A model generated the notes under the pieces. It worked only from the letters and a program-made list of their open reading frames with translations, searched no databases and was not told the origin of the DNA. A program made the translations under genes and the position numbers. A stretch of DNA of 64,000 nt from Carpediemonas membranifera BICM (taxonomy: Eukaryota > Protista > Fornicata). Shown piece after piece: positions 2,541 to 25,386 of this stretch (its first letter is position 1; each line of letters opens with the position of its first letter). Location: the NCBI GenBank assembly GCA_019828565.1, contig JAHDYR010000025.1:868001-932000 (forward strand), written 5' to 3'.

Positions 2541-4195
2541 TTATGATAGCTCTGGGCCGACGTCGACTGGGGCGATCTCCCAGGTCATTGATTTGACTGC
2601 ATCATGCTCCTTAATCGCGACCAACTCGGCCACCCCATCTGACACCGTCTTCGCGAAAAACCACTGGCCGGTGGAGTTGCGGAATGAGAGGGTGTATCTG
2701 CCTCTTATCCTAACCTGTCTGCTGTCAAAAGCCGTCGCCTCAAAGGGCACGCTGTACTGTTTGTCACGGCTGTACATGTGAGTGCGGCCCTCAGTGACCC
2801 AGATAAGAACGTATCCACAATAGAACCCCTTGACCTTCTCTCGGAAGCGGAGCGGGGTGGCTGTGAGGCATTTGTCGCCCTTGCTGTATCCAGGCAGCAG
2901 GCCCGACTGGGCGATATGAAAGGGAAGTTCGCCGGCGAACAGCAGCTGGCGGCCGCTGAGGAAGATGCTGCAGTAATTCCCAATGCTTGGTATCCGGTCG
3001 ACCCTGAAGGGCAGCTCCTCGAAGCCAGTCATCTCGTTCTCGTGCCCGTGTCCCAGCCGGCCACAGAAGTTCCATCCGCTGATCATTCGTCGATCGCCCA
3101 TGGAGAGGATAACAGTGTTCCATGCATGCATGATGTGATCTGGGACAAAGCCATACGGCACGGCGACTGGGTGGAAGAGGTGGCTGTTCTCCCGCTCGAC
3201 TGGGCCAACATACCATGTTGAATCATCACCAGTCATGACAGTGCCGACCGGAGTGAAGATGAACGTTCGAGCTCTTATCAGCGACACACCGGTCACCACC
3301 CTGTGCTTCTCCCAGGCGGGCAGGCTGGCCTCGCGCTCGGCGACCTTGGGGCAGTTGGGGAAGGTGAGGCGGGTCGGGTCGACGAACCCAGATGACTTGA
3401 ACCCCAGCTGACCATTGTAGCAAGCGCCCCAGCCCCACAGACCCTTGGGGGTCCTGGCGATGTGGGTGAACCAGTCGCTGTAGACCTCGAGGGCCCGGGG
3501 CATCCTGGCCCTGGTGAGGGCGGTGTGGTGGTCAGTGTCGAGCATGAAGAGTCGGCCCATGTACATGTGGTGGTGGTAACATCCGTAACAGTTACCACAC
3601 TCATCCTCGTCACTGCACTGATAGCTCTCGCCGTCCTTCTCGGCGGCGTTCAGCGTGAAGAAGAACTTGCGGCAGAGGAACCAGAGGCACTTGGCCTCGG
3701 GCGTGAGAGCCTTGCGGATCTTGTCGTACATCTCGGTCTCATCTGGCCACTTCTCTCGAGCCTCGTTCAGCACCCTGTCCTCGAGGTCTGGGTTGGCCCC
3801 GCCACCCAGCAGACACGCCCACACCGCGCCCTGGTTCAGCGTGTGCATGGCGACCGGGAGCTCCTCGCCGTCCGCGAGCTCGACGTTCATGGACAGCGGG
3901 GGGCCGCTGGTGAGGATCGAGCAGGCGCGGTCGAGGAGGGCTTGCGCGGTTGGCTTGAGAGGGGGATCTTGCAGAGCGTGGCGAGGAGGGATTCGAGAGA
4001 CGGGGCGCTCGTTGGTGTAGCAGTGCTATCTGTTTTGTGCATCGAGGGCATTTGTTCGCCGAAGTGTCTGGAGTAGGCGCACTGGAGCAACGAGGGGATG
4101 TCCCCGGAGACGGAGGCCGTTGCGGTGAGCGACTCGCGGAATACGGAGCTCAGCGCATCTCTGATGGCCGATGGCGAGGAACTAGCGCTGCTCAT
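2541..4195 (-). pseudogene. RCC1-like repeat family copy 1, frameshifted (possibly a sequencing error)
   Basis: ORFs 3887..4204 and 2541..3890 join if one base is restored in the G run at ~3961-3965. Family motifs WGWG..NGQLG and GRLGHG. Confidence 0.75.
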
Positions 4196-4366
4196 CGCTT
4201 TCAACGCTCAGTTCGGTGATGGCCAAATTCAGACGACTTGCCGACTCCCCGACGCTAAACGTGTCGCCGCAGAGTGTCAGGCATGATGGGTCGACGCAGT
4301 CTGGTTGGTTTATTGGTGCGAGAACTGGCTCCGACCAAAGGGCAGCGCGTCACTCGACCACACGAT

Positions 4367-6019: not shown

Positions 6020-6304
6020 GTCGTTCGTTCGTTGACAAGCAACTCGGTCACAGTCACACCCGTGGCCGGCAAGGCAACACCAGTGCAGCCCTACCCATGA
6101 GTAGTGCCGCGAGACGCTCATTGGAGTATCCTTCTACGTCCCATTTCACAGCTCAAAGCTGCACGTTCATTGCTTGATCTCCCACTTGAGAGCATGGAAT
6201 GACGTAGATGGCGACCAAAGCCACGCTCGCATGCTACCATCGATACACGCATCTCTGCAAGCCAAGACAGTGCCACGCCGTCCATTTACTGGCGTATGCC
6301 AAGC

Positions 6305-7209: not shown

Positions 7210-7281
7210 GCAGCGGTGGTCTAGGGGTATGATTCCTGCTTAGGGTGCAGGAGGTCCCGGGTTCAAATCCCGGCCGCTGCC
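7210..7281 (+). tRNA. tRNA-Pro (AGG)
   Basis: Cloverleaf with acceptor GCAGCGG/CCGCTGC, anticodon stem CCTGC/GCAGG, AGG at 7242-7244, T-loop TTCAAAT. Followed by a T4 Pol III terminator at 7285-7288. Confidence 0.97.
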
Positions 7282-7295
7282 TACTTTTCAATTCC
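7280..7295 (+). repeat. 16-bp direct repeat CCTACTTTTCAATTCC, left copy (right copy 24951..24966)
   Basis: Exact match at both ends of the retroelement island; overlaps the tRNA 3' end and terminator. Confidence 0.85.
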
Positions 7296-7763
7296 GATGC
7301 CGCCCGACTCGCGGTCCACAAAGTGTGGCTCTATAACAGAGAGCCCTCCTCTTAAATCCAACCAAAATGGGGGGCGAGTATTTACTTCGGGTGGCTTCCC
7401 CGAGCTCTTATGACAGACCCGGGTAAATCCTCGTCTCGCGATCCGGTCAGGTCCGAAACGGCTCCGACACCTGCCGATGCGTTTCGAAGTGTGACCTAAA
7501 GTGCACATTGATCGGCGCGCGCAGGTGCCAGTGATGGTCCTGTGACAGGATCCACAAAGTGTGGCTCTATAACAGAGAGCCCTCCTCTTAAATCCAACCA
7601 AAATGGGACAATCCCGCAAGACGTCCCTGTGGGACTAAAGCTTTGGGCCGGCGAGTCTATCTCGCCTCGACCAGAGTTAAGAATTAATGATGAATCCAGG
7701 CCGGCGAGTCCGTCTCGCCTCGGCCGTTCCCCCTCGAACGCGGATGTTTAATGGAGGGGGTGG

Positions 7764-8645
7764 TTAAAAGTGGGGCCCGAGAAGGCTGAGGTTCATCCTC
7801 CTGGTGAGGTCCTCGTTTGTTCTGATGGCGTCAGCGACATAGCTGCGGAGGGAGGTGACGTCCTTCCATGTGCCCATTGAGAGGATCACCTCCAGCGGGA
7901 CTCCTGATAGAGCCATCTCCGACGCTGCCCCCCTTACGGAAGCTGTGGAGACCCGTCCGTGGACCGAACAACGCCTTCACGACTCGTCGGAGGTGTGCGG
8001 CTGTGAGCGGTTTGTCTCTGCTCAGGCGCCCGTTGATTATGACTCGCCAGATGGGGGTGTCATCAGCCAGGTAGTGTGTGCCCTCGACCCAGCGTCTAAG
8101 TGCCAAGGCCGGGTTGAAGGCGGCTGATAGCCATACGTATGGTACGCGCTTCTTAACTCCCGTTAGGATGGTCTTGGTCCGCTGAATGTGTAGGAGAATG
8201 TCGCCGTTCTTGAGTAGCTCCAGGTCGGCCGGGCATAGGGAGAGTATCTCGATGCCTCTGGACACCGTCAGATAGGCGACTGCCCCAAAGAGACATGCCT
8301 GATATGACTCAAAGTCGTCACTCCGGCGCCCCAGTGCCTCGATCATCTCAGCCTTGGTGATGGCGCGCGAGCCGCCGGTAGTTCCCGCCGTGCTGGCGCC
8401 CTTAGCCGCCTGCTTAACGATGTACTTGGAGTTGGCGGGCGGATGCCAGTCTTTGAGGAACTCCTGTAGCTGAACAATCCAGTAGCCCTTCCTCGCCACG
8501 TTCGATGGCCCGCAGAAGGAGCCTTCGTCCTTGAGGAAGGCTACAAGCTGGTCTCGATCCGACAGGCTGCGATCGCGAGAGCCTTCGAACCTGGCCACCC
8601 AGCCGGCCACCGTCCGAGCAGACGCGTGATTAAGGTGAATCACTC
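7764..8645 (-). pseudogene. Tyrosine recombinase of family A copy 1, disrupted
   Basis: SRGIE, TKT and HSFRKG motifs. Cut by the LINE insertion, plus one extra C at ~7928-7933 relative to copy 2. Confidence 0.85.
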
Positions 8646-8658
8646 AATTTTCCGCACC

Positions 8659-11600
8659 ATGGGCAAAAGTAGTTCTGGCTACAGAGGCCCAATCTTAGCG
8701 AAAGACACTGGTCCGCAACCACAAAGTACCACTGCTGCTCAAAGCAGTATCGCCGACCAACGCTTCCTGACGAGGAAGCACCTCAAATATGTTTCATCCG
8801 CCCCTCCTGTCCTCAAAAGACAACTACTAGCAGGCATTGCCTTTATTGGGGACCCCGTAATCATCCATCCCTTCAAAACTGAGCTTGCAACACACTCATC
8901 GACGGGCAATTTCGTCTCGGTGGCAATCCCAAACCTAAAACGGGACAACGCCCGCTATAAGCGGGCTAAGGATGCCTGTAATGACCTACTCCAAGATGCT
9001 GAGCACCTTGCAGCTGCATTTGGGCTCTCCATCCGGGAAGGTATCCTCAAACTCTTTCCCCTCATTGCCTATGATCTTGTCCACACGGTTGGAACGCTTA
9101 AGGCTGCCCTAATCCACTGCAGGTTCACGGGACTCCCCCCAGCTAGCAGCATGGACTGGAGCAAGTTCGCAGATTTCATCTCCGCCAGATGCCCTACAGT
9201 GTTAGACCAACGGAACGATCCTTGGCCTCCAACCATATCCACTGTCCCGAACTCTCCGAGCCTGACATGGCAGGCAGTCGGTCAAAGAGAGCCTCTTGGT
9301 CCCCGCATCGCTCACTCCGGCCGGCCCGGCCCCATTGTATCTCCGGATGGTCTCAACCTCACGCCGTTCATGGGCCTCGAGGTAATCCACTTACTGTATG
9401 GCGCCTCTCCCGTGTTGGGAGGACATGCGATGACTGAGCTTTATGCCGAATGGGGTGGAGCCACAGCGGCCGACCTTCAGTCTTCCTTATCGAATACCTT
9501 ATCAGACAGCCTTATCTCTCCCATTCGCCGGAAGGCCTATCCAGTCGATGACTCTACTATATCCATAAGTTCCTGTTCAAACTCTGATGTTGAGCTCGCA
9601 AGCCCGATCCCTGTTAGCGTGGAAGAGGTTGCGCGGCAGATTCGGAAAGAAATATCGTCTTGCGAAGAGAACAGCATTTATCCATCATCCCCGATCGTAG
9701 CTGAGGAGCCTAACGCCCGTTGGGGCCCTCTCATGAGCATCCCAGTTCACGCCGACGGCAACTGTGGCCTTCACTCACTTGCTGTCTCTCTGGGTATGAC
9801 GGGCCTGACGAGACGAGAAGCCGTGTCGAAACTTGCCTCCGCCATCCAGAATGGTACAGTGGATCTTAACTCCTCGTGGAGATCCACGGTGCGCACTTTA
9901 ACCACACACACCACCGCTAGCGACATTGGTAGTGCCTTCCTATCCACCACAGACCTCCGCAATATTGCATCGCTCTTTGGAAAAAATGTGCTTATTGCTC
10001 ATCGATATGATGCCAACACAGTCTCAGTAACCATCCCAGCATTATCCGAGTTCTCTACACTTCCTCTCAATATTGACGCGCTCAAAACGATGCTCAAAAC
10101 CGATTACATCCTCATTAGACTGAGTGCTCTGCACTTCACGCCTCTTTTTCCGTCTGTGAGGAGCGCAGAAGCAAGGCGCCTGCAATATGCTGAATATCGT
10201 CCAAGAAGAGCCCCCTCTAGTGTGGCTCGCAACAACATCGCCGCTGAAGGCCTCGATAGCGCCCCCCTCTAGTGTGGCCCGCAACAACATCGCCGCTGAA
10301 GGCCTCGATAGCGCCCCCTCTAGTGTGGCTCGCAACAACATCGTCGCTGGAGGCCTCGATAGCGCCCCCTCTAGTGTGGCCCGCAACAACATCGCCGCTG
10401 GAGGCCTCGATAGCGCCCCCCTCTAGTGTGGCCCGCAACAACATCGCCGCTGAAGGCCTCGATAGCGCCCCCTCTAGTGTGGCCCGCAACAACATCGCCG
10501 CTGAAGGCCTCGATAGCGCCCCCTCTAGTGTGGCCCGCAACAACATCGCCGCTGAAGGCCTCGATAGCGCCCCCTCTAGTGTGGCCCGCAACAACCGTGA
10601 TGGCGTCCATGGCGCTCTCATAGGCTTGTCTGGCAAGAGAGAGGGTCCTGTTTCTCATATCCTAGTGGTCGACTTTGAAGGACTAGGAACTGCCGTAGAC
10701 CGCAGAGCCACCAAACAGAGTCGCGTCTCATATCCCGTAGAGGCCGGCGCCACACTCCTAGCCCGCGTCAAGGATCCTGAAACGGGGATAATGATGTGGG
10801 ACGTCGCAGGGGTCCACTGGGGCGGCTTAGAAGTTGATATCCCAGCGCAGTTAATGCAGACAGCTTTATACCAAGCGGCAGTTGTTCATGGGTGTCCTCC
10901 CATGAGCTTCAGAGTACACCCCGACCACCCCGGGATCTCATTCCCCAGCCCGACCGACTGGCTTCACCACCTCACGGTCATAGTGAGCTCCCTCCCGAAC
11001 TGCATCATGGTCGCCAAAGACCCGAGACTTGAGAACTCCGTCCTAGAGTCATGGGTCTCGGAAAGCGATGCCCCCTTCCTTGACAAGGTCTATGACATAA
11101 GTGATCTAGAGTCCATAGACAAAAGATCCTTTGGGCATATCCATGACTACTGCCGTTCACCCGAGTTCTCTGAGGCGATGTCGATAGCCCAATGTCTCAC
11201 AATGGTGAAGTGCCCCTGCCCGTACCACATTGGAACAGATCCAGGCTACCATTGTGCTCTCAGTGACACTGTAGCTTTCGCGGCGGTACTGCACACAGTC
11301 TCATGTCTCGACCGAACATCTAGGGGAGCTATCACATCCACGTACTCTGAAATCACTGATGCATGGAGGAAAGACTTGGATGTCCTCATCGGCAACTGGT
11401 CCTCTCTCCTGCCCGACCTGGCCGTGCTACTACTCCAAGACCTCCACCTGCCAACGCTTGAGGAGCTGCACCACATCCTCAAGGAGTACGTAATAGCACC
11501 TAAGGGTGGCTGCTCCTTCCCCACAGGTGATAGGGCCAGACAGGCTATGACGTGCCGTCAATTTATTGCAGTGCGGAGCCCAGCTCGGCGAGGGTGGGAA

Positions 11601-14600
11601 TGGTTTGATCCTCTTGCCAAGATGATAGCGGTGGCGGATGCGGCAGGCATAGTCCCTCCAAACAGCCTAGAACAGCCATTCATCAGGATAGCGACGGTGA
11701 ATAACGACAGCTCCTTCAGCAATCAGTTGACGGCTCAGCAAGTTTACTGGGAGTGCCCTCCTCACCGAGACCTACCGCAATCTGCTGCAGAGCTTCTGGC
11801 TCTCAACGTTCCTCCCTCGGCAGACAACTCCAAAGGAGTAGTCAAGAGGTCCTACAGAGCGCCGGATCATTGGTTTCTAGTCCCGAGAATCCCCAACAAG
11901 CCAGTGCGAGGGCTCCGCAAAGTCAGACTGAGAGGGCCCATGACTCGAGGAGACATGGATGCCCTCATACAGAAGGCAGAAACAGCATGGGTCAGCGAAG
12001 CGTGGGACCTTTCTCCGGTGTTCAAAGCTCTCCAGAGTGCCCGAGCTCACGACGGTAACTGGAGTAAGGTTGAGCCACCGGCTTCTTCCACGCCAGCTCC
12101 AAGCTTAGCCACGCGAGTCTCGCCTGCGACCTTCAGGAATCAGAGAGGGCGAAGTCAAGCAGGTAGACGACCAGTAAATGGTCACCTCTACTCGTGGAAT
12201 TGCACATCACTCAACATCACCAAGATGACTCTTGCTCTAGTACAAGACGTGGACATCATGGCCATTCAGGAGCTATGGTGGTGGGCCCAGTCCCCGGAGC
12301 TGCCCACAACGAATGACAAGGTCCTGCTATACCACGGAGTGATCAAGTCAGAGTCCGAGACAAAGCATCTAGGCGTAGGCATCATGCTGAGGAAGGAATT
12401 AGCTGAGCTCTGCACATACGTCGAGAACCAACCCCACTCTCCAAGGTTGATTCAAGCTGACCTAGGCTGCGTGTTTGTAACAGCTGGCAAACTGAAGGTC
12501 CGTGTCATGTCCATCTATAGTCCATGCACGGGAGCACAAGCCAAGAAAGAGTTCCACACTCTACTGTCCTCCGAGGTGAAGAAAGCTATTGAGCAAGGGC
12601 TCCAAGTTCTTGTCATGGGAGACTTCAACACGAACCTACTAGATCCATCGACGCTGTGGGCTACCACCCTAAAGGAGTGTGGCTTGAGACTGGTAGTGCC
12701 CGACGGCCCGACCTTCATGGACAGAGTAATTGATGGCATCGCAGCAACACCTAAGCTGGCTGATCTCATCAAGAAGCCGCTCACAGTATCCCTTGAACCC
12801 AAAGGACACAGAGCGGTTGTAGCAAGATCAGGCATAACGGGTTACTTTCGCACGAGGAGCAAGGCAACAGCAGTCCTCAACGAAAGACATGTGGCTAACG
12901 TACTTGAATGCAGCAAGGATCATCGAAAGGCGAGGACTCTCCTGAGGAACATCAGCCACCTTGATGTCGACCAAGCCTTTCAAAGCCTGACGTCGACTAT
13001 CAACCGATGGGCGTTGGTGGACACTGCGGCCTCACATGAAGTGAGAGAAGTCGAGAGAGCAGAAGACTACGACCACTGGTTTGTCGCCGGAGAGCAGATC
13101 GGTATTTCCCCTGAACGGCTCTATGAGCTCATCATTGAGGATCATCGCCACCAACATCAGCTCAAGGAGAGGACGAGCAGAGGCCCCAAAGCTCTCGTGT
13201 GCTCTGAGCTATCATCAGCAATGCTATCAGTAGCGTTAGCATCCTCGGAGAGCCACGCCCACTCAACACTCAAAGCCTACCATGCCCGAGCCAAGCGAGT
13301 CTCTGAGAGCATGGATGTCATGTCCCCTGAATTCTTTAGATACGTCCATTGGAAGCTTTTTGAAGGGGCAGGCCAGAGTGTCTGGTCTTCGCAGAGACCT
13401 GGAAGGCTTACTCAGAGGACCCGGCCTTCCTGCTACCACCACAGTAGGAGGCAGAGTGATCACCAACCGAGAAGAAGTAGCCAAGGCCTTCGAGGAGTGG
13501 TATGCGTCAGTATCATATGTGGCAGGAGCAGTAGAACCATCCATCTCTCGCCCCGATATAGAGCTCGAAATCACGGACACTCTCCTGGAAGGGGCTCTCA
13601 AATCTGCCAAGAATAGATCAGCCCCAGGCAGTGATGGACTAACCCCGGCAATTTTCAAATATTGCCCAGTCCTCAAGGAGGCGCTCAAGACTCTGCTACA
13701 GAAGTGCATTGACCAACTCAAGACCCCAGCAGAGTGGCATACCGCCGTGGTAATTCCATTGAAAAAGCCCGGCTCTACTAGCGATGCTCCTGTGGCGTTC
13801 AGACCTATCTCCCTACTTTCCACAGCCCACAAGGTGCTCGGCACAATGATGATCCGCACGATTGACCGAGACAACCCTCTTCCCCCTGAACAATACGGTG
13901 CAAGGCCGGGTGTTTCATCGGTTGATGCACTATGGGCTATTGAGCACGCGAGACGTGGGTTCAAAGCGACCCACATTGGGACTCTGGACGTGGCTAAGGC
14001 CTTTGACCGTGTCCCGAGGAGAGATGCATTGGACTCGTTGAGGGGGGAACAGAAGGGCCATTGAGATGTTGAAGGAGATGCATTTGCACACAAGGATCTC
14101 TATGCGAGGTAGCAGCACTAGCGCCGCTACCAACACAGGAGTACGGCAAGGATGCACCACTGCTCCCTTCATCTTCACAAGATACCTTGCGGAAGTCCCT
14201 CACATCATTGCAAGCTTAACCGCTCTAGGGAAGGAAGCAATTGAGAAGCTTCCTCCCGACATAGAGACCCTGAGACGAGTGGCAGCAAGGCCGTGCGTTC
14301 CCTGGATTGTCACAGTCCTGTTCGTTGATGACATTACAATAGTAGCTCCCTCCCTTAAGTGGTTGGAGGCAGCACTTACGGCGGCATGGACATGCATGCT
14401 AGCGCTATCCTTGGAGCCCAACGATAAGACCACCTATGTCTCAGAGGACGACACCCCCTCCCTCACCATCCATGGCAATCCAGTCATTAAGAGAGACGCG
14501 GTCAAGCTCCTAGGGGTCCTCTTCGATACGTCCCGAGACTTCTCCACCCAGAATAGGACTATGGGCGAAAGGATAGACAGAGAGCTACGACTACTGAGAG

Positions 14601-15463
14601 CTAGCGGCGTGATGCACTCCAAGTTCTGTCCTCGCATTGTAGAGGTCTACACCCTCCCCAAGCTGCTGTACGGGTGGAGCGTCTGGGCTAATCATAAGGC
14701 TGTCTCCCAGGTAGGCAAGCTTGCATCGGCAGCCCTAAGGATCAGCCCAACTGCATCGGAGGCGAAGTACCTGGAGCTAGGCTGGCTGCATCCAGAGGCA
14801 ATGCTCCTGCTGGACAGATTCAAGCAAGGGGTGAGATGGGCGAGAATCCATCCGGGCAAGGATCTCCCAGACTGCATTGCTGAGGCACAAGGCAGCCTTG
14901 GCCTGTCCCACTCCGACAGCCTTGACCTAGCAGCCTGTCGAGCAGCCCAGCTCTCTCACGACATAATCTGCCGTGGTAACAAAGTGGCTGTCAGGAGATA
15001 CGTCACGGAGTCGGCACTCACCCGCCCTTTTACCCGCTCTAACTACCCGGCCAGGCAGCCATACCTCGACCATCTAACGGCTGGGCCAGCGAAGCGCCTC
15101 GCGATGCTACGGCTATCGTGTCTACCAATGCCAACGAGAGGGGCTCTTCCTGACGCGTGGCAGCCGGTCAGGGGAATCCTACAGGACCTGAAGGATGAAC
15201 CGGAAGCCGCCGCAGCTCTTGAGGCATGTCCTCTCTGTCAGGGTGAGGCCATCGCCGCGGCTGTGATTGAGATCCTGACGTCCCCTACCAAGACCTTAGC
15301 AGTGCTGAGATCCAGGACGTGGGTTGTCCTGAACCAGACCCACTTGGCTAAGTGCGACCACTTCAAGATTAACCCCATCCTCCTTTTCAAGGACCCCCTG
15401 ACCCTGAGCAGGCGTGACGACGCCAAGCTCACACATATGTTGAGTGTACTTTGTGACGCGTGA
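8659..15463 (+). CDS. LINE polyprotein (~2266 aa after removing four +1 homopolymer insertions): OTU protease, 17-aa repeats, DEDDh exonuclease, APE endonuclease, RT, C-terminal CxxC
   Basis: Motifs ADGNC...LHF; VVDFE...HCALSD; SWN, AIQE, SIYSP, GDFN; GVRQG, LFVDD; CPLC. Extra bases at ~10262, ~10416, ~13357 and ~14042 account for each frame change. Confidence 0.8.
10210..10595 (+). repeat. 51-bp tandem repeat (~7.5 copies) encoding APSSVARNNIAAEGLDS
   Basis: Directly visible near-perfect units. Confidence 0.95.
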
Positions 15464-16453
15464 CTGGTAGGTTCCCTCGCTTACATAGGAAAACGCCACC
15501 GTCCTCCCCGGTCTCAGGACCTCCTCGATCATCGTCCTGAGGGAGCCCCATCGGGCTCGGAGCACAGAGTCCCGCAGCGCCAAGAGCTGGAAGTTGTGAG
15601 CTGGCCGACCCGCGTGGGTCATCTTTTTACCCTTCTTCGAAGGGGTTTTAGGCCCTCCTCTCCCTGCAGCTTCAGAACAGTACTCTTGGGCGCCGCAGCT
15701 CTGGCTTCCAATGTTATGAGAACCGTTGCCCTCCTGCGGCTGATCACCGCTCGTCTGGCTCGGGTTGTGGCCAGTGCCTGGAGGTGGACACCCCGGCACT
15801 GTATCAAAAAATAAACTCAAAAACTCAAAACTCAAAAGGTGAATCACTCTGTCCGACCTGAGGACTCTGTGGAAAACGTCCTGAACGCCATCACATTGAA
15901 CCGTAGGCGTCCTCTGTCCTGTAGGTGAAGTAGGTGGGCCAGATCTGAGCTCGAAGCCGGGACGGAGAGACGGAGTTTCCAGGGCGTCCAACTCTTGAGG
16001 AGTCTCATCTCCGGCGCTTGAACCTCTGGGTAGAGGAGAAAGACTGCTGAGGTCCAAGACCTCGGGTGTCTCTCCATCTGGATCTGGATGTTCCGAATTT
16101 TCTACCATTCTGCCCGCATAAACTGCGCGGCTCGCCTGGTCGGCGCATCACCATGCCGGAGCGAGGCGATCTCATTGCCCTCCGCTCACGGCCCGTTACC
16201 CGAGGTAACCTGTCAGCGCGATGTAACGCCAGCTAGCTGTCCTAGCCTCTAGACATACTTGCTCTACCCAACGGGGATATCCCACCGGCAACGAGCATAG
16301 TGGAATGGCTTGCAGGCACGCTTGCGAGCCCAAACCGACCGTCTCCTCGAGAGACCGCGTCAAAGAATGTCTGTTGTGGCTTACATCTGCCGTTGTAACG
16401 CGTGTCAGCCCCACCCTACCTAGCTCTCCCAGCCACTAGCTCCCGTCAGAGAT

Positions 16454-19400
16454 TTAAAGTGGTGGTTGGAGAAGGATGGAGGCCAGGTGTCCCTGGACCC
16501 CCGGGTGTGTGCGGACCCCGTTGCCCATATATCTCAGCATGCTTTTCGTGGAGGCCCACGTCCCCATGGACAGGAGGACTTCGGTACTCGTGTGGGCTAC
16601 CGCCAACTCCGTGGTGGCGCCCTTGCGGAATGAGTGCCACGAAATGTCGGTGCCGTACGCCTGGTGGATCCAGTGGCGGAGGGTTGACGCCGGTAGCGGC
16701 TTCGATAGTGAAATACCACCGGTTGAGGTGATCGCCCGCCAGATGAGGTCGTCGTCGCGGCGCGTTGCCGTGGGGACCCATGCCTTCAGGGCCCTTGCTG
16801 GGTTAAAGCGGGCCCACGATTGGTTTGGTACCAGCTTGCGGACGCCTGTGGCAGTCTTAGTTCTCGCGAACAGAAGGAGGGCATTGCCATCAGCGTCGAA
16901 CTCGACGTCTCTTCGTCTGAGCCCAAAGATCTCTGCGCCTCTACTCACGGTGATAAAGCAGAGAGCAGAAAAGAGGGCGGCCTGGAAGGCTTGGGGTGAC
17001 TTCCGACGTCTGTCTATGACCCTGCGGACTCTCGCGGACGTGACAGGCTTCGCACCCCCGGTCAGGCCTTCTACAGAGGCGACGTTCCGGGCGGCGGCGA
17101 TTATCTGCTTGGCAGCGATCGGGGGGCGCCAGTCAGACACGAGTGGGGCGGCCTCGCAAATCCAGTAGCCTTTCCTGTGTATCGACTGTGGGCCCGACGT
17201 GGTACCCTCGGTCAGAAGGAACTCTTTGAGCTGTTGCGCGTGTGAGTGGCTCGCGTTGCGGGATTGGAGGAATTTGGCGACCCAGCCCGCTGCTGTGCGG
17301 CGCGACGATTCGTTTCTGAAATGTGATAGTCGGTCGTCAGCGAGGAGGGCTTGGAACGGGTCCTCAGGATAAGCGCCACGAAGCGGATCTTGCCCTTGTC
17401 TGTCGCTGTCCAGGCTAGCTCGGACTGCAGGAGGTGTTTCGCCTGGACTCTGAGGTACAACTTGAGGGGTGTCAAACGTTTGATGGCTCGGACCTCGGGC
17501 GAGTTGAGGTCCGGGCACAGGACTATCGCCGCTGATCTCCAGTGTCGAGGGTTCCCAGTCTGGGTCGAGGCGCGTATTGTCTGGAGGCGACGACACGTCA
17601 CTCCAAGAAGGGCTATAGGAGGAGCTATATAAATCCTGACTCCCCTCCAGTCCATCTGGAAGCCGTTGTCGTGGATTGACCAGGCTATTTCTGCAAAGCC
17701 TGGTAAGGCCAGAACCTTGTCGGGGCGTGCTGTGACGTCGATCTCGACCGGCCCCCACTTGCGCATGATGGTTTCCAAGACTTCTCGGGGTGACGACCAG
17801 TCGAGCTTGGCGAACCTGGAGAGCCTGTCCGCCTGGACATTCAGGTGTCCGGCAATATGGAAGCAGTGGACGTCGAGGCGCTTGGTTTCTGCCGTGTTGT
17901 AGATGTCCTGTAGGATCTGGTGTGCGGCTGGGGGAGGTTCGGCGATCCCCGTCTGTTTACCCAGCTGATGGCAGCTGAGTTGTCGGCAAAGACTGTGAGA
18001 GAGGAGCGTGACTCCTGCTGGGGCACGAGATTGATCGCCTGAGCGATCGCGAAGAGCTCCTTGACGCCAATGTGTTCCCCCTTGAGATGAGGGGGGAAGG
18101 CACCCTGTGATGCCGCTCCCTTCTCCCCATTGAACAGGCATGCTCCCCAGCCGGACGTTGATGCGTCTGAGGTGACAGAAATCTGGAGCGTATCGCGTAT
18201 TTCCCAGTCCGCTCTTGCTTCGGCGAACCTCTTGGGTGGGCGATCGCGGAGGAGGACTTGCCACGCCGCCAGCTGCCTGCGGATTTGGCTGGAGAGGTGG
18301 ACGGTCTCCGTCGTAGGGGTGGCCTGCAGTGGTCTGAGTGCGAGGCGGGCGAACTGTGTGGTCCCTGCGAAGAATGACAGACGGCCTAGGAGCTTCTGCC
18401 AGTCTGAAGCTGTGATGGACCCGACCCGGAGGGCCTTGGAGATCGTGGCCGTGTAGGCCTCGGCCTTGTCTTTTGAGATTCTTAGGGACTCGCTTGCGGT
18501 GTCTATGTGGACACCTAGGTAGTCTACCTGCTGGGTCGGCGTGAGGACGCACTTGTTGAGGCCCGGTATCGCCCCCAGCGATAGCATGAGGTCGATGATC
18601 TGCGGGGTGACCGAAGCTAGGTACGATGGGGAGGCATGGGACACTAAGAAGTCGTCGAGATAGACCGCGATGGTCACCCCGAACCTGTGTGCGATGATCT
18701 TTGCAAGCTGTATGGTCGTGCTCTGGAACACGTACGGCGCCGCTGTCCATCCGAAGCCGAGTGTGTTGTACCTGAATGCGCGGCCGTCCGGTAGGACCAC
18801 GCCTAGGAGGGGGGAGTCTCGCGAGGCGACGCCAAGTTGGTGGTATCCCGATGCTAGGTCTATCTTGATCATGTAGTCGTTCTTGTGCAGATTGCGGACC
18901 GCCCGTCTGATGCCGAACAGACGAAACACCCTCAGCTCTGCTGTCAACTCGTTCAGGGCTCGGAGGTCGTGCACGGGGCGGACATCGTCTTTGCCCTTCG
19001 ACACCGCGAACAGGGGTGCGCTGTGACGCAGTTCGTCTATCGGGCACGGGGAGAGGACGCCCTTGGCGACTAGCTCTTCGATCTTCGGGAGTAGGCGGGG
19101 GTCCACTCGCCTTTGCGGTTCTGGTGGAGGGGGCGCAGAGGTGAGGTGGATAGGGACGCCATCCCGCAGCCAGCTTACTACCTCGGGGGAGGCACCGAGT
19201 CTTGCCCACACCGGCCACTTTTTGTTCATTGACGGGAACTGAACATCTGTGGCAAGGGCTACTTCTTGTGCTTCTTGTGAAACCCCCTTTGTTCTGGGGC
19301 TGGTCCTTTCTCTTACCCTTGGCTCTGGCTTTGGCTGCGCAGTAGGAGATGGCACGGGGGGTTTTGGTCTGGGACGTGTTGAACAAGTCGAGAAACAGTT

Positions 19401-19785
19401 CGCAGGTTGCGTCCGACCAGTTGTCGTCCTTGAGGTCCAGAAGGGTACGGCGTGCTTGGAGTTCCACCAGGAGTCTTGCTTTGAGCGGCTCGTCGTCGAG
19501 GGCGTTGACGATCACCATCACGCGGCGAAGCCACTTTGCTTCCGCCTTAAGTGGTCTCTTTGTCGGAAGCTCGCCGTATGCATCCATCTCTGCCAGTGTT
19601 TGGTCAATATCCGCTTCATCTTGTTCAGGGAAGAAATCAATTTGAGATTCCTTCGGCGGCTCGGTCTCGGGCGGCGGAGGAGGCGGATTAAGCTTTGCAA
19701 GCTGTTGCGAGATGGTAGCGATTGAGGCTTCTAGGTTATTGAGCCTCGTTGCCGTCGGATCTGGATGTTCCGAATTTTCTACCAT
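16454..19785 (-). CDS. Family B Gag-to-tyrosine-recombinase reading frame (continuous if one base is restored at ~17930-17934)
   Basis: Gag-like N-terminus MVENSEHP. YR motifs SRGAE, TKTA, HSFRKG, GTW and LRY. I checked codons 17759-17932 in the YR frame and found no stop. Confidence 0.7.
17212..19229 (-). CDS. Family B Pol: RT, RNase H and DNA N6-adenine methyltransferase-like domain (frameshift ~17930)
   Basis: KIDLASGYHQ, GFGW, YLDDF; TSDAS...KEL...ADN...NVQADRLSR; WGPVEID...YIAPP as in the DIRS/PAT MT domain. Confidence 0.85.
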
Positions 19786-20341
19786 TCTGCCCGCATAAAC
19801 TGCGCGGCTCGCCTGGTCGGCGCATCACCATGCCGGAGCGAGGCGATCTCATTGCCCTCCGCTCACGGCCCGTTACCCGAGGTAACCTGTCAGCGCGATG
19901 TAACGCCACTATAACAGAGAGCCCTCCTCTTAAATCCAACCAAAATGGGGGGCGAGTATTTACTTCGGGTGGCTTCCCCGAGCTCTTATGACAGACCCGG
20001 GTAAATCCTCGTCTCGCGATCCGGTCAGGTCCGAAACGGCTCCGACACCTGCCGATGCGTTTCGAAGTGTGACCTAAAGTGCACATTGATCGGCGCGCGC
20101 AGGTGCCAGTGATGGTCCTGTGACAGGATCCACAAAGTGTGGCTCTATAACAGAGAGCCCTCCTCTTAAATCCAACCAAAATGGGACAATCCCGCAAGAC
20201 GTCCCTGTGGGACTAAAGCTTTGGGCCGGCGAGTCTATCTCGCCTCGACCAGAGTTAAGAATTAATGATGAATCCAGGCCGGCGAGTCCGTCTCGCCTCG
20301 GCCGTTCCCCCTCGAACGCGGATGTTTAATGGAGGGGGTGG

Positions 20342-23092
20342 TTAAAAGTGGGGCCCGAGAAGGCTGAGGTTCATCCTCCTGGTGAGGTCCTCGTTTGTTC
20401 TGATGGCGTCAGCGACATAGCTGCGGAGGGAGGTGACGTCCTTCCATGTGCCCATTGAGAGGATCACCTCCAGCGGGACTCCTGATAGAGCCATCTCCGA
20501 CGCTGCCCCCTTACGGAAGCTGTGGAGACCCGTCCGTGGACCGAACAACGCCTTCACGACTCGTCGGAGGTGTGCGGCTGTGAGCGGTTTGTCTCTGCTC
20601 AGGCGCCCGTTGATTATGACTCGCCAGATGGGGGTGTCATCAGCCAGGTAGTGTGTGCCCTCGACCCAGCGTCTAAGTGCCAAGGCCGGGTTGAAGGCGG
20701 CTGATAGCCATACGTATGGTACGCGCTTCTTAACTCCCGTTAGGATGGTCTTGGTCCGCTGAATGTGTAGGAGAATGTCGCCGTTCTTGAGTAGCTCCAG
20801 GTCGGCCGGGCATAGGGAGAGTATCTCGATGCCTCTGGACACCGTCAGATAGGCGACTGCCCCAAAGAGACATGCCTGATATGACTCAAAGTCGTCACTC
20901 CGGCGCCCCAGTGCCTCGATCATCTCAGCCTTGGTGATGGCGCGCGAGCCGCCGGTAGTTCCCGCCGTGCTGGCGCCCTTAGCCGCCTGCTTAACGATGT
21001 ACTTGGAGTTGGCGGGCGGATGCCAGTCTTTGAGGAACTCCTGTAGCTGAACAATCCAGTAGCCCTTCCTCGCCACGTTCGATGGCCCGCAGAAGGAGCC
21101 TTCGTCCTTGAGGAAGGCTACAAGCTGGTCTCGATCCGACAGGCTGCGATCGCGAGAGCCTTCGAACCTGGCCACCCAGCCGGCCACCGTCCGAGCAGAC
21201 GCGTGATTAAGGTGAATCACTCTGTCCGACCTGAGGACTCTGTGGAAAACGTCCTGAACGCCATCACATTGAACCGTAGGCGTCCTCTGTCCTGTAGGTG
21301 AAGTAGGTGGGCCAGATCTGAGCTCGAAGCCGGGACGGAGAGACGGAGTTTCCAGGGCGTCCAACTCTTGAGGAGTCTCATCTCCGGCGCTTGAACCTCT
21401 GGGTAGAGGAGAAAGACTGCTGAGGTCCAAGACCTCGGGTGTCCAGTCTGAGTCTGAACTCTCGCTGTCGCTATCTTCTGGACTATGGCTGCCATAGACG
21501 AATTGGGGGCCCAGAGGACGCGACATCCAAGCCTTACGTCTACGTCCGTTGAGACTGTCTGGACTGGACCCCACTCCGCGAGGACAGATTCCATGCTGGA
21601 CTCCAGAGAGGAAGGGAGTCGTGAGAAGCCTCTGGACAGCCGATCTGCTGCCAGGTTGATGATGCCCGGAGTGTGTAGTCCACGGAGTGTCAGGTTCCGG
21701 TCCTCCGCCTCCTTCTGGATCTGGGCTAGAATGTGCAGGGCCTGAGGTGGAGCCTTCGTAGACCCCGCCTTGTTGAGCCAGGCCAGAGCTGATGTGTTGT
21801 CTGAGAAGATCGATAGCTCGCGTTGGGAACTCTGTCTGCCGATCAGACGGATGCCCTGTAGGATTCCCGCGAGCTCCTTCACGTTGATAGATTCTGCTCT
21901 TAGTTCTGGAGTGAACGTGCCCGAGGCTGAGGTCCCATACTCGCCGTGCACGGCTGCTCCCCACTTGACTCCAGATGCGTCTGTCGATACGACGAGGTCT
22001 AAGGAGGGGTGAGCGCCCCAAAGCGACTGAAGTTCTCTGATGTCTCGGACTGGGCGCTCTCTTAGCAGTAGCAGCCACTCTTGCAGTAGCTCCTTGGAGA
22101 GTGGGTCCTGTTGAAGGTGTCTCAGCCGGAGGAAAGCCCCGTGGGCGGTTGTAGCGAAGTAAGTCAGTCTCCCGAGGATCTTGGCCCAAGTCTCCTGATC
22201 GATGGTCTTGCCTGCCAGAGCCTGATGAATGTGAGAGGAGTAACGTTTGGCCTTGTCCGCCGGGAGGCGTATTGTAAAACTCGCGGAGTCTATCACGAGC
22301 CCCAGATAGACCAATGACTGAGTCGGTGCCCATTCTGACTTCTCCTCTGAGGTGAGGACACAGAGGTCGGCTAGAGTCCGCCTGATGCGCGGCACCGCCC
22401 TCCTCAGGATTTCTCGGTCGCGGTGAAATAAGAGGAAGTCGTCGAGGTAGACAACGATGGTAAGACCCGTCCGAAGGGCTAGTATCTTGGCGAGTTGGTT
22501 GGTGATCGTCTGAAACACGAACGGCGATGCGCGCCAGCCGAAGCCTAGCACTCTGTACTGAAACGCTCGTCCGTCTGGAAGATAGACTCCTAGCAGCTTG
22601 CGGTCCTCCTTCCGTACCGGTACTTGATGGTACCCGGACTTGAGGTCGAACTTGACCATCCAGTCGCCCCTCTGGAGAAGGGAGAGAGCTCTGCGCAGAC
22701 CGTAGAGCCGGAAGGATGAGCGCTCTGCCGAGCAGTCGTTCAGTATCGTGAAGTTGTGAATGATCCTCTTCGACTCGCCCTTCGGCACAGTAAACAGCGA
22801 GGCGGTGTGTCGCAGGGAAGAGGGATTCACTTGCTCTATGACGCCTGTCTCTATCAAGGAAGGAATCTGCTGGACAATGAATGGGTCGACTGTCGGCTGT
22901 TGCCTTGGTGCTGGTGGTTGACTTCTCAGACGGATCTCGACCCCGTATCGTAACCAGTTGATCACCCGTTGTGATGCTCCCAACCTCTGCCACTCCCTCC
23001 ACGCCGCGTTCATGCATGGAAAGAGGGTTAGGTGTGGGCTCTCTTGCCGGAGGATCCTGTCTGAGTGCGACCTCGGTCCTGAGCGCGGCCAC
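20342..23092 (-). CDS. Family A tyrosine recombinase ORF (long N-terminal part overlaps Pol in another frame)
   Basis: R-K-H-R-W-Y catalytic set: SRGIE, TKT, HSFRKG, GTW, LRSY. True start uncertain. Confidence 0.85.
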   Translation of the reverse strand: MAALRTEVALRQDPPAREPTPNPLSMHERGVEGVAEVGSITTGDQLVTIRGRDPSEKSTTSTKATADSRPIHCPADSFLDRDRRHRASESLFPATHRLAVYCAEGRVEEDHSQLHDTERLLGRALILPALRSAQSSLPSPEGRLDGQVRPQVRVPSSTGTEGGPQAARSLSSRRTSVSVQSARLRLARIAVRVSDDHQPTRQDTSPSDGSYHRCLPRRLPLISPRPRNPEEGGAAHQADSSRPLCPHLRGEVRMGTDSVIGLSGARDRLREFYNTPPGGQGQTLLLSHSSGSGRQDHRSGDLGQDPRETDLLRYNRPRGFPPAETPSTGPTLQGATARVAATAKRAPSPRHQRTSVALGRSPLLRPRRIDRRIWSQVGSSRARRVWDLSLGHVHSRTKSRIYQREGARGNPTGHPSDRQTEFPTRAIDLLRQHISSGLAQQGGVYEGSTSGPAHSSPDPEGGGGPEPDTPWTTHSGHHQPGSRSAVQRLLTTPFLSGVQHGICPRGVGSSPDSLNGRRRKAWMSRPLGPQFVYGSHSPEDSDSESSDSDWTPEVLDLSSLSPLPRGSSAGDETPQELDALETPSLRPGFELRSGPPTSPTGQRTPTVQCDGVQDVFHRVLRSDRVIHLNHASARTVAGWVARFEGSRDRSLSDRDQLVAFLKDEGSFCGPSNVARKGYWIVQLQEFLKDWHPPANSKYIVKQAAKGASTAGTTGGSRAITKAEMIEALGRRSDDFESYQACLFGAVAYLTVSRGIEILSLCPADLELLKNGDILLHIQRTKTILTGVKKRVPYVWLSAAFNPALALRRWVEGTHYLADDTPIWRVIINGRLSRDKPLTAAHLRRVVKALFGPRTGLHSFRKGAASEMALSGVPLEVILSMGTWKDVTSLRSYVADAIRTNEDLTRRMNLSLLGPHF
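21217..23013 (-). CDS. Family A Pol: RT, RNase H, degenerate MT-like tail
   Basis: KFDLKSGYHQ, GFGW, YLDDF, STDAS, KEL, SDN, NLAADRLSR. Confidence 0.92.
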   Translation of the reverse strand: MNAAWREWQRLGASQRVINWLRYGVEIRLRSQPPAPRQQPTVDPFIVQQIPSLIETGVIEQVNPSSLRHTASLFTVPKGESKRIIHNFTILNDCSAERSSFRLYGLRRALSLLQRGDWMVKFDLKSGYHQVPVRKEDRKLLGVYLPDGRAFQYRVLGFGWRASPFVFQTITNQLAKILALRTGLTIVVYLDDFLLFHRDREILRRAVPRIRRTLADLCVLTSEEKSEWAPTQSLVYLGLVIDSASFTIRLPADKAKRYSSHIHQALAGKTIDQETWAKILGRLTYFATTAHGAFLRLRHLQQDPLSKELLQEWLLLLRERPVRDIRELQSLWGAHPSLDLVVSTDASGVKWGAAVHGEYGTSASGTFTPELRAESINVKELAGILQGIRLIGRQSSQRELSIFSDNTSALAWLNKAGSTKAPPQALHILAQIQKEAEDRNLTLRGLHTPGIINLAADRLSRGFSRLPSSLESSMESVLAEWGPVQTVSTDVDVRLGCRVLWAPNSSMAAIVQKIATARVQTQTGHPRSWTSAVFLLYPEVQAPEMRLLKSWTPWKLRLSVPASSSDLAHLLHLQDRGRLRFNVMAFRTFSTESSGRTE

Positions 23093-23510
23093 CGCGGCGA
23101 AAATTAGCGTCGCGCTTATCGCCCTTAGACTTGGCGCGGGCCGCCAGTTCCAGGACCTCGTCGCGATCAGGCACGCCCTTCGCCTTGCAATAGTTCTCGA
23201 ACCGCTCTGCAGTAGCGTCAGTGTACACGTCCTTGATTAGAAGGTACTGGATTCTTGCAAAGAGAATGTTCCCGATCTCCTTCATCTTTGCGCCGTTCTC
23301 GATCCTATTCATGGTCTTGTATACGAATCTGGCCTCATCTTCGAGGCCGAACCTCTTTGGCATCTCCAGGAACAGTGGACGGCGAGCTGCTTCTGCTTGC
23401 TGCTCCAAAATTGCTTCCGATTGTATCTTAACCAAGCGCTCCAGCTTCTCGATACGCTTGTTAAGCTCATCGGGACTGTCTTGCGGCGGCAGGTCTTCGT
23501 TATCAGACAT
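23028..23510 (-). CDS. Family A Gag-like protein
   Basis: First ORF, directly after repeat A1. Coiled coil and basic C-terminus; similar to family B Gag (MPKRFGLEDEARF vs LPTKRPLKAEAKW). Confidence 0.7.
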   Translation of the reverse strand: MSDNEDLPPQDSPDELNKRIEKLERLVKIQSEAILEQQAEAARRPLFLEMPKRFGLEDEARFVYKTMNRIENGAKMKEIGNILFARIQYLLIKDVYTDATAERFENYCKAKGVPDRDEVLELAARAKSKGDKRDANFRRGGRAQDRGRTQTGSSGKRAHT

Positions 23511-23591
23511 CCTGCCGATGCGTTTCGAAGTGTGACCTAAAGTGCACATTGATCGGCGCGCGCAGGTGCCAGTGATGGTCCTGTGACAGGA

Positions 23592-24950
23592 GCCACCTGA
23601 CCCTCTACACTCTGTAGATCCAACGGGGGAAAGAATATTTACGCAAGAAACCCCTGTTTCGCCGCGTCAATATTCGAAGACTTACGCGCCTTCGGCTCCT
23701 AAGTAAGTCTTGGGTTTCCCTCGCGTACCGACGAGGGACGCTCTCCCGAGCGCGTTCTTACAGCCACCGGCTGCGAATCGTTCGTCATCTGGCCGCATAA
23801 ACTGCGCCGACCAATCTTGACCAATGACGCGGGCATCCGGCGATTGCCGGCCTCGCCCACGTCCCGTCGCCCTTGCGACAATGAGCTGGGGTACTACCCA
23901 ACGCCATATAACATGGCCAACTAACATATAATCACCAACCCAGAGGGGGGGGTGAGAAATTTATTCCAATGCTGAAGTTTCTCACAGCGTCGCTCCTGCG
24001 CGCTGAACAGGCATCGCCTGCGGGTTCTCGCTCCCGGCTCGTTTTTTTCGGCCGGATCAGCCATTCTCGTTCTTCTGAAGAGGATCGAGACGATCCTTGA
24101 AATTTGCGCGCCCATCGAATCCGATCGAATCGGATCAGGCAGCACGACCCGACACTCCCGGGTGTCAACTGTGACCCATGTGGTCCACGGCATCCCTTCT
24201 GCCAGGCTTGCTGGCTAGATAACACAATCATTCCAAACGGGGGGGGGGGAAGAACATTTATTGTAACCATAGAAATGTTCGCTCGGGATCTCCGCCCGGT
24301 CTGCGTCTTGCAGTGCGTCGACATCGTGCTCGCGTGTCGAAATCCAAATTTCTGCGCCACGACTGACATAAACTGCCCGAGGCATCGACACCCCAGGCGT
24401 CCACGGTTCTGTGTAGAACCCAACCCGCCAGATTTTGCTGGCCACACAACATATACACTCTTACCCAAGGGGGGTTGGACATTTATCTCTTATCTGTCCG
24501 GCGGTCTCTTCCGCCATTTCTCTTGGTCTGACTCCATTTTTCAGTCGATTGCGCCATCGATTCTCCCGGATCGAATCACCTCGATTCGTATCCGAAACTG
24601 CCACCAGATTCAACCTCTTAGCACGGCGACCCGGTCCCGCTGGGGTCTCGCCCGCGCCTCGGCACTCCAGGGTGCCCGTGAGCTCATGTGAAACTCGCTT
24701 GCAGGTAAATCCAATGGGGAGTAGAACATTTACTGGTCGTTTGAGGCTCAAACTGATCGAATGTTCGCCCGGTTCGGGTTCGGACCGGGCCGTGCGGGCA
24801 CGAAGTAAACTCGTGTTTTCGAGCTTCTGTTCTTGACTTGGCGACTCCGCGCCAAAATCGAGCGACCGAATTTTGGGTCCGCGCTCCTCGCGCCGGAGTC
24901 GTGTCGGCGCATCTACGCGCCCTCTCACTCGCAGGTAAGGTAAGGTACTC
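23592..24950 (-). repeat. Tandem array of five diverged ~250-315 bp units resembling solo YR-retroelement termini
   Basis: Each unit has CCA(A)-N-G4-11-...ATTTA (23620, 23939, 24233, 24465, 24711) followed by a hairpin, like the family A end (7362). Unit boundaries are approximate. Confidence 0.65.
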
Positions 24951-24977
24951 CCTACTTTTCAATTCCCAATATTCACC

Positions 24978-25020
24978 TGTTGCGCAGTATAAACACATTG
25001 TTTGACCCTTCAATAGCACA
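24978..25020 (+). repeat. 43-bp sequence also present at 59659..59701 and 63495..63537
   Basis: Exact TGTTGCGCAGTATAAACACATTGTTTGACCCTTCAATAGCACA at three loci. Confidence 0.9.
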
Positions 25021-25386
25021 TCACCCGAAGCCTTAAACTGCGACTGGCTGCGAATTCTCTTCACAAGCAAGTTAGACCTCACCAACCATCAAATAATACA
25101 GCATTAATCCAGTTGGAGGGTATTCCATCTTGATTTTTTGCGATTTTGTGCAAAGGCCGTCAAACTGATGTCTTGGGGAAGGTCGTGGGTGTGGGAGACC
25201 AACAATGGAACAAAAAGAAGACAGTCACGGCTCATCGCTACGCATGGGCGAGTGACTGATCGTAGCCAGCTCGGGAAGTGCCGTCTTTCATTCCTCCTGA
25301 CGCTAAGTGCACTCCCACAACCCGAATAAACTCATGTCACTCACGGTCTCCCCAGAGCTCTCAGGAATGATTCAATAAGCATAACT

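Follow-up and report, generated by a model that had tools for sequence, protein, structure and literature searches.

Ngaro elements are defined structurally by split direct repeats in the order A1-[open reading frames (ORFs)]-B1A2B2 (PMC4157794, PMC8547959). Solo AB repeats of Ngaro are already known; they were described in Cafeteria burkhardae and likened to solo long terminal repeats (LTRs) (Hackl et al. 2021, PMC8547959). In reviews of the targeting of RNA polymerase III (Pol III) genes, tRNA targeting is given only for integrase-bearing LTR elements and for elements resembling long interspersed nuclear elements (LINE-like) (PMC5911963, PMC5006619), and a 2018 review knew of insertion downstream of tRNA genes only in dictyostelids (PMC5911963), with Skipper-2 at 8–23 bp and TRE3 at 40–150 bp downstream of tRNA genes (PMC5911963, PMC5006619). 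DIRS-1 of Dictyostelium inserts into itself, not at tRNA genes (PMC5006619). Here we describe an array at 23592–24950 of a 64,000-nt stretch of Carpediemonas membranifera BICM (contig JAHDYR010000025.1, positions 868,001 to 932,000; hereafter, the window), in which short repeat units lie downstream of a tRNA-Pro(AGG) gene. We conclude, with a probability of about 0.8, that the array consists of stacked solo AB modules of five Ngaro-like tyrosine recombinase (YR) retrotransposon families, and that the stack arose from tRNA-targeted insertion. It is a by-product of that insertion and not a dedicated integron-like archive.

The elements resemble those of PMC8547959 in their layout, A1-[gag, reverse transcriptase and RNase H (RT/RH), YR]-B1-A2-B2, in the occurrence of isolated AB modules and in the lack of target duplication at the joints. 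They are unlike Ngaro in having a unique ~90-nt spacer with a conserved G-run and hairpin between A2 and B2, and in that at least 15 families share a common motif and a terminal palindrome. In contrast to the Cafeteria elements, which are associated with virophage DNA or scattered sites, they sit downstream of tRNA genes, and solos of different families are stacked and nested. Repeated insertion in a narrow window beside Pol III genes, the reduction of older copies to terminal-repeat remnants and nested piles of mixed families are shared with yeast Ty1–Ty4 and Dictyostelium TRE3 and Skipper-2, but integration of those elements relies on a DDE integrase or on target-primed reverse transcription and duplicates the target, whereas a tyrosine recombinase is encoded here. 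DIRS-1 is likewise a YR retrotransposon that prefers existing copies and so forms clusters; however, it has inverted terminal repeats and one-family centromeric clusters instead of split direct repeats, a tRNA anchor and different families.

The array is made of five co-oriented, mutually unrelated units of 220–310 bp, in an abutting type of arrangement and each read as B-spacer-A on the plus strand, or as A-spacer-B in the coding sense, i.e., on the minus strand of the window. The exact unit ends were obtained by comparing copies across contexts:

23592–23899, minus strand: U1, solo B(remainder)-spacer-A of family 1, with the motif at 23620, a hairpin at 23620–23678 and the Gag start MTNDSQP
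23903–24188, minus strand: U2, solo B-spacer-A of family 2, with the terminal palindrome GCCAT-ATAAC-ATGGC at 23903–23917 and the motif at 23940
24201–24421, minus strand: U3, predicted solo B-spacer-A of family 8, with the palindrome GCCAG-GCTTG-CTGGC at 24201–24215 and the motif at 24233
24427–24696, minus strand: U4, predicted solo B-spacer-A of family 9, with the palindrome GCCAG-ATTTTG-CTGGC at 24427–24442 and the motif at 24465
24697–~24950, minus strand: U5, what is left of the oldest unit, with the motif at 24711 and a hairpin at 24711–24769

The first-pass annotation, made from the window alone, had recognized the five co-oriented units correctly but had them abut directly; the boundaries are shifted, and fillers of 3, 12 and 5 nt separate consecutive units. 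The CGCCA ends that it assigned to the first and third units are a boundary artefact, composed of filler and the start of the next unit's palindrome (GCCAT.. and GCCAG..).

A whole-array search of the 24.2-Mb genome showed that each unit is repeated independently of its neighbors. Clustering of 74 motif-bearing units from 36 loci gave 16 clusters, one of them a truncated family-5 copy (thus at least 15 families), and U1–U5 fall in five different clusters; the label of U5 in the 74-unit clustering is family 1. The U1 family has at least 13 copies at 99–100% identity. No B1 was found after any of U1–U5, and all five are therefore read as solo modules. That the units are instead a cluster of non-coding RNA genes or host exons is extremely improbable: the conserved motif and hairpin recur at a regular spacing of ~260 bp, but U1 and U2 are termini of recombinase elements, Rfam gave no match over 23400–25100 even at a permissive E ≤ 1, and Pfam gave none on the three array ORFs of at least 155 aa. 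Both the RNA-cluster and the coding-exon readings were dropped on these searches, in line with the first-pass view of the units.

Evidence for the identity of the units comes from full-length relatives of ~3.9 kb that encode Gag, RT and tyrosine recombinase. U1 is the B2-spacer-A2 module of a full-length element at 1529–5465 of locus L001, matching at 1529–1831. Eighteen nt past this match, B1 (1850–1881) repeats the first 32 nt of U1 and is followed by 3.4 kb of internal DNA and A1 (5327–5465), which repeats the last 139 nt of U1. This family 1 element encodes RVT_1 (E = 4e-12) and Phage_integrase (32.2 bits), and its Gag ORF begins with MTNDSQP within A1, identical to the stub in U1. U2 is the corresponding module of a full-length element at 1519–5336 of L003 (B1 1804–1844, A1 5188–5336). 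This family 2 element encodes RVT_1 (E = 1e-21) and RT_RNaseH, has a YR homologue that is 46–54% identical to that of element A (the family A element of the window) with one frameshift (tblastn), and its Gag starts with MADPAEENEP, so that the U2-type stub reads MADPAE(K/E)NEP. The stubs that had been described as Gag-like in U1 and U2 are thus true Gag N-termini. For U3 and U4 the link is at the level of coordinates: the B and A parts of U3 lie 5.1 kb apart in the expected orientation and flank a YR ORF at C6:344.1–349.3 kb, and B(1–40) of U4 recurs with 100% identity at C6:57.6 kb and C6:20.7 kb, in both cases 124 nt from the 3′ end of a YR ORF. No autonomous copy turned up for U5; its matches were solos and an 81%-similar 1.68-kb tandem family. 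The earlier proposal that the units are solo ends of YR elements is therefore partly supported by these alignments: U1 and U2 are proven cases, the evidence for U3 and U4 is partial, and for U5 an autonomous copy is lacking.

Elements L001 and L003 share the split-repeat layout of element A, i.e., A1, gag, pol with a C-terminal tyrosine recombinase, B1, A2, the ~90-nt spacer and B2. In the coding sense, copy 2 of element A in the window has A1 at 23596–23503, B1 at 20185–20129, A2 at 20133–20041 and B2 at 19949–(19893). The B-spacer-A unit of family A measures 241 bp (7315–7555) and not 236 bp, as had been stated. Because RT and tyrosine recombinase are encoded and the layout is A1-[ORFs]-B1-A2-B2, the elements are classed by domains and repeats as Ngaro-like YR retrotransposons (order DIRS). 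The pol of family A itself has Phage_integrase (27.6 bits) and no RVT_1 match in Pfam. Pfam detected no methyltransferase domain in families A, 1 and 2; the absence of this domain sets Ngaro apart from DIRS and PAT elements. The element A pol ORF is 99% identical to the C. membranifera hypothetical protein J8273_0207, and a search for relatives with the pol protein returned only the organism's own protein.

The order of insertion can be read from the pieces of split element ends between tRNA-Pro and the native flank:

7210–7281, plus strand: tRNA-Pro(AGG), the anchor of the insertion site (ARAGORN)
7280–7295, plus strand: left copy of a 16-bp direct repeat, CCTACTTTTCAATTCC, comprising the last 2 nt of tRNA-Pro and the T-run terminator flank
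7295–7301, minus strand: U5 B-start piece 1 (CGATGCC), which stayed beside the tRNA on U1 insertion (27-mer reconstruction)
7302–7314, minus strand: first 13 nt of the U1 B-start (GCCCGACTCGCGG), cut off from the remaining U1 sequence when element A inserted
7315–8645, minus strand: element A copy 1, 3′ part, with B2 7315–7371, spacer, A2 7463–7555, B1 7551–7607 and the recombinase end (self-BLAST, tblastn)
8646–15835, plus strand: non-LTR retrotransposon (APE + RT) inside element A copy 1, with a 14-bp target duplication (21209–21222 equivalent)
16080–19911, minus strand: family-7 recombinase element ('element B'), with A2 16080–16235, B1 ~16236–16280, YR ORF 16454–17758 and A1 19757–19911
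19909–23591, minus strand: element A copy 2, with a pol ORF including YR at 20342–23092, gag 23028–23549 and A1 23503–23591(96)
23900–23902, minus strand: U5 B-start piece 2 (AAC), the loop of the U5 terminal palindrome
24189–24200, minus strand: U5 B-start piece 3 (GGCATCCCTTCT; 27-mer reconstruction)
24422–24426, minus strand: U5 B-start piece 4 (AACCC; 27-mer reconstruction)
24951–24966, plus strand: right copy of the 16-bp direct repeat, where the native flank restarts

The fillers at 7295–7301, 23900–23902, 24189–24200 and 24422–24426 (7 + 3 + 12 + 5 nt) concatenate to the 27-mer CGATGCCAACGGCATCCCTTCTAACCC, which is found exactly in an independent U5-family copy (L013), where it runs on, minus one T, into the sequence at which U5 begins (24697). 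Therefore, U5 was already resident when each of U1–U4 entered its tRNA-facing B-start. The two halves of U1 (7302–7314 and from 23592) are in turn separated by the whole complex of element A, the LINE-like element, the family-7 element and element A, and intact family-1 copies read GCCCGACTCGCGGGCCACCTGACCC at the B-start. The nesting proves that element A is younger than U1, and U1–U4 younger than U5. With U5 taken as the oldest, the insertion points after the tRNA-Pro end are +13 for U5, +40 for U4, +35 for U3, +23 for U2, +20 for U1 and +33 for element A. Any other order would place some insertions hundreds of nucleotides from the tRNA. Identity to the nearest other copies is 99.9–100% for element A, 100% for U1, 99–100% for U2, 97–99% for U4 and 95–98% for U3 (solo copies elsewhere for both), and 92–95% for U5 (solo in all cases); it thus rises towards the tRNA, in broad agreement with the insertion order. 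The suggestion that different families had inserted separately at one tRNA-linked site is supported, and both the nesting and the divergence fit the youngest insertions being nearest the tRNA.

Under the explanation that we favor, the elements would integrate a short and fairly fixed distance downstream of tRNA genes, with their 3′ (B2) end facing the tRNA. At tRNA-Pro(AGG), U5 would have arrived first, followed by U4, U3, U2 and U1 into the first ~30 nt of the U5 B end, then by element A 13 nt into the U1 B end, and by a family-7 element 16 nt into the B end of A. Each newcomer would push the older residents off the tRNA, so that the stack grows on its tRNA-proximal side, and recombination of A1 with A2 would have reduced the older residents to solo modules, in the way that solo LTRs form. 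The stack is a clean natural experiment, in which the order of at least six insertions is legible from split element ends; it yields exact donor joints, target positions at nucleotide level and two structured cis elements (the terminal palindrome, and the G-run with its hairpin). The integration and replication of Ngaro and DIRS elements, which are poorly understood, thereby become directly approachable.

The solos could also have arisen without a full-length element ever standing at the site, either by integration of B-spacer-A mini-circles, resolved from the replication circle at its two A/B joints, or as leftovers after the recombinase excised a B1-internal-A1 circle, and we regard this as unlikely. 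The internal A2/B1 joint is identical to the donor joint, which makes resolution by the recombinase possible in principle, and solos are very frequent. There is also a tandem family related to U5 (L034; G000:C8:145501–155500, with matches running on to ~C8:157500), in which a 1.68-kb unit is repeated head to tail at least seven times, every copy with a U5-like (81%) B-spacer-A module and the motif; Gag and Pol of element A found no match in it by tblastn, and tandem amplification of a non-autonomous derivative may be its origin. Homologous recombination between A1 and A2, however, the explanation given for the solo AB repeats of Cafeteria (PMC8547959), yields the same product.

The counts on tRNA genes that follow describe a sample of loci and are not a genome-wide census. 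Element sequence was found downstream of 19 sampled tRNA genes of at least 12 isotypes (Pro, Leu, Ile, Ala, Val, Gly, Lys, Asn, Met, Arg, Ser and Glu), and a tRNA gene so placed was present in 14 of 20 loci that had been selected by motif clustering alone. Wherever a unit adjoins the tRNA, it is co-oriented with it, and a few units farther out are inverted (L014, L024 and L027). The first element joint could be placed in 13 loci, and in these it lies +10 to +33 nt past the tRNA end, after the T-run terminator. Stacks of two to four unrelated solos occur in L020, L022, L023 and L024, and L025 has a full-length element and three solos, such that the survey for similar arrays proposed in the first-pass annotation did reveal shorter stacks downstream of many tRNA genes. 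A newcomer also splits the resident's B-start in L011, L016, L018, L023, L025, L028 and L033. The stack in the window is the largest among the loci sampled.

In compact genomes, tRNA-gene targeting is the textbook 'safe haven', and a third retrotransposon order, one based on a tyrosine recombinase, appears to have evolved it, here in a deep-branching, free-living metamonad whose 24.2-Mb genome holds at least 15 families and, among 312 candidates, at least 150 recombinase matches. Targeting downstream of tRNA genes by this order was not found in the literature searched, and a 2026 preprint on DAM-encoding retrotransposons, which mentions C. membranifera, does not contain 'tRNA' in its text.

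The same survey bears on whether the array has a function of its own, as an integron-like archive, a selected landing pad or a host small-RNA 'memory' locus, all of which had been raised for it. The array shares with integrons a tyrosine recombinase, polar growth with the newest insert by a fixed point and a folded imperfect palindrome. Its order of units is comparable to that of integron cassettes, all units are co-oriented, and, as they hold the 5′ and 3′ ends of elements, antisense RNA would be possible if they were transcribed from the tRNA side. Unlike in integrons, though, there is no fixed intI/attI/Pc platform, the units are non-coding transposon ends and not gene cassettes, and the hairpins are without evidence as recombination substrates. 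The recombinase genes nearby belong to the transposons themselves. No resident integrase, attI or promoter module and no cargo was found at the array, the T-run of a Pol III terminator separates the tRNA from the stack, and the same stacks at many tRNA genes are the plain, passive outcome of a target preference. An integron-like or small-RNA function thus finds no support and is very improbable, and a new host function is not supported by the array.

All families share two structured features, one at the B-start and one at the end of B. The first is a terminal palindrome, GCNNG-N3-6-CNNGC, with a 5–6-bp stem and covarying arms (GCTAG, GCCAG, GCTTG, GCCAT, GCCCG, GATGCC, GATGT and CCACA), which stands at the B-start in 15 of 15 families; any such palindrome is present in 31% of random 70-nt windows, whereas here each family has it at the boundary. 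Across the families the donor joint is precise, with the A-end joined to the B-start directly before the palindrome (...GACAGGA/TCCACAAAG in A, ...TACTACCC/GCCCGACTC in family 1 and ...GTGGTCCAC/GCCATATAAC in family 2, the slash marking the joint). The target position varies by a few nucleotides among insertions, and no target duplication was seen at nested joints. Judged by where nested insertions fall (below), the palindrome looks like the core site of the recombinase.

Several observations weigh against the explanation that we favor. Full-length counterparts were retrieved for U1 and U2 only and for none of U3, U4 and U5, and U5 may never have been autonomous. The order among U1–U4 follows from the distance rule and divergence, without direct nesting, and by divergence U3 and U4 are in the 'wrong' order. 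A 16-bp direct repeat brackets the entire 17.7-kb island, which is not expected from integration by a tyrosine recombinase. The stability of the hairpin described below is modest, with minimum free energy (MFE) z-scores of +0.8 to −3.2 against shuffles. Finally, 9 of 14 mapped nested insertions lie in or within ~3 nt of the resident's palindrome. As for the direct repeat, nothing equivalent was present at 18 other tRNA loci, and a search for words of at least 9 nt common to the tRNA 3′ flank and the downstream DNA returned only the 14–16-bp repeat of the window and a doubtful 10-mer in L035; target-site duplication as a general property was dropped on this search.

The proximity of nested insertions to palindromes points to a rival in which the resident guides its successors, with later elements, once a first insertion stands beside the tRNA, steered by recombinase recognition of its att-like terminal palindrome, much as DIRS-1 enters its own copies, and not by distance from the tRNA. 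We hold this only tentatively, as a possible but less likely course of events. The palindrome is at the donor junction of all 15 families, the insertion points of U1 and U2 coincide with the two arm/loop boundaries of the U5 palindrome, and five further insertions (of A into U1 and family 0, of family 1 into families 0 and 12, and of family 7 into A) are within ~3 nt of the right arm of a palindrome. Some joints show microhomologies (CCAC, GCC), and homing would still give growth on the tRNA side, since the resident's B-start lies there. Against it, other nested insertions lie 6, 6, 11, 19 and 30 nt past the palindrome, the palindrome arms of donor and target families are unlike, and apparently naive tRNA flanks were used, e.g., at +10 nt in L029. 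The intact palindromes of the distal U2, U3 and U4 were never used. Because only the palindrome nearest the tRNA was ever used, we consider that insertion is governed chiefly by proximity to the tRNA, with the palindrome adding a local preference.

Mosaic joints were observed in L007, L011, L015 and at C26:1253002–1253374, e.g., a U3 unit that passes into the tail of a U5-type A, and in another type the A-end of U1 is fused to U4 at position 32. Some of these are nested insertions, and others may be inter-family recombinants. A bolder proposal has the elements recognize tRNA genes and one another's terminal palindromes as a common att-like site, so that the stacks beside tRNA genes would be true platforms of site-specific recombination, which could exchange modules among families and be read as an ordered, datable record of invasion, and/or could supply host defence with antisense small RNAs. 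We consider this quite doubtful; if true, the mosaic B/A combinations in L007, L011 and L015 would represent inter-family module exchange.

The second shared feature is a motif in which CCA(A)N is followed by a G-run of 4–11 and a short inverted repeat, the first arm of which leads into ATTTA. It occurs once in each of the five units and also at the two element A B2 ends (7362 and 19940). A loose version, GGGG-N0-16-ATTTA, had 31 overlapping matches in the window versus 2.3 ± 1.8 in shuffles, and these collapse to the five units, the two element A B2 ends and a few strays. The stricter CCAANGGGG-N3-16-ATTTA had 97 matches in the genome versus 1 for the reversed control, which bears out the earlier claim that the motif is common to the units and the B2 end of element A. 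In all cases the B repeat ends inside the G-run, and the hairpin lies 0–8 nt beyond. In all unit families, e.g., family 0, copies that are otherwise identical differ in the length of the G-run (4 to 13), and this could reflect slippage during reverse transcription or homopolymer error of the long-read assembly.

The hairpin arms differ among families (GAATATT/AATATTC, TGAGAAA/TTTCTCA, GAACATTT/AAATGTTC, GGACA/TGTCC and GAACATT/AATGTTC), and the perfect stem averages 6.9 bp over the 16 unit clusters versus 4.3 ± 1.0 bp at random sites, so that the hairpin with varying arms, first noted in the window, holds across families. When representatives of 14 families were aligned with MAFFT, half of the families had misaligned 3′ arms because loop lengths differ. 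With an MFE z-score that averages about −1 and is ≤ −1.9 in only 5 of 15, the case for the hairpin is its fixed position with differing arms, not its energy.

On the coding strand, the motif reads as the hairpin followed by an A(A/G)TAAA-like hexamer, a C-run and TTGG. Our best guess is that it is a cis signal of the element 3′ end, which may act in RNA 3′-end formation or in strand transfer during reverse transcription, and B would be regenerated from B1 much as the U5 region is in LTR elements. The reading of ATTTA as a poly(A) signal (reverse complement A(A/G)TAAA) is a weak hypothesis drawn from resemblance: A[AG]TAAA occurs within 60 nt past the stop in only 1 of 16 long ORFs of the window that are outside transposable elements and were taken as host genes. 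Six of the eight such ORFs ending in TAA have A as the next base (TAAA). This context recalls the stop-codon-embedded poly(A) signal of some metamonads.

A further sequence, CATAAACTGC (GCAGTTTATG on the coding strand), is a candidate initiator or promoter element. Several families conserve it 10–20 nt upstream of the Gag ATG, e.g., families 0 and 7, and in the window it stands in A regions at 23797 and 24369.

Element A copy 1 is interrupted by the LINE-like element, which holds a 51-nt tandem repeat at 10207–10616, and continues at 15836–16070. It ends internally, and 9 nt (16071–16079) join it to the middle of A2 of the family-7 element; a deletion at this joint removed the 5′ half of A and the B2-spacer of family 7. 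The family-7 element accordingly has no B2-spacer of its own, and its right joint lies 16 nt into the B-start of element A copy 2. Its large ORF (17212–19785, minus strand) has a weak, below-cut-off match to a Dam-like adenine methyltransferase (E = 0.038), and among the DAM-domain proteins in the 2026 preprint's survey of DAM-encoding retrotransposons a Carpediemonadida clade is reported. The neighbors of the array are the tRNA gene, transposons and a UGGT gene. Upstream of tRNA-Pro, adjacent paralogous ORFs at 2541–3890 and 4367–6121 (minus strand; 449 and 584 aa) share DNA blocks of 79–100% identity ~1.8 kb apart and are a recent tandem gene duplication.

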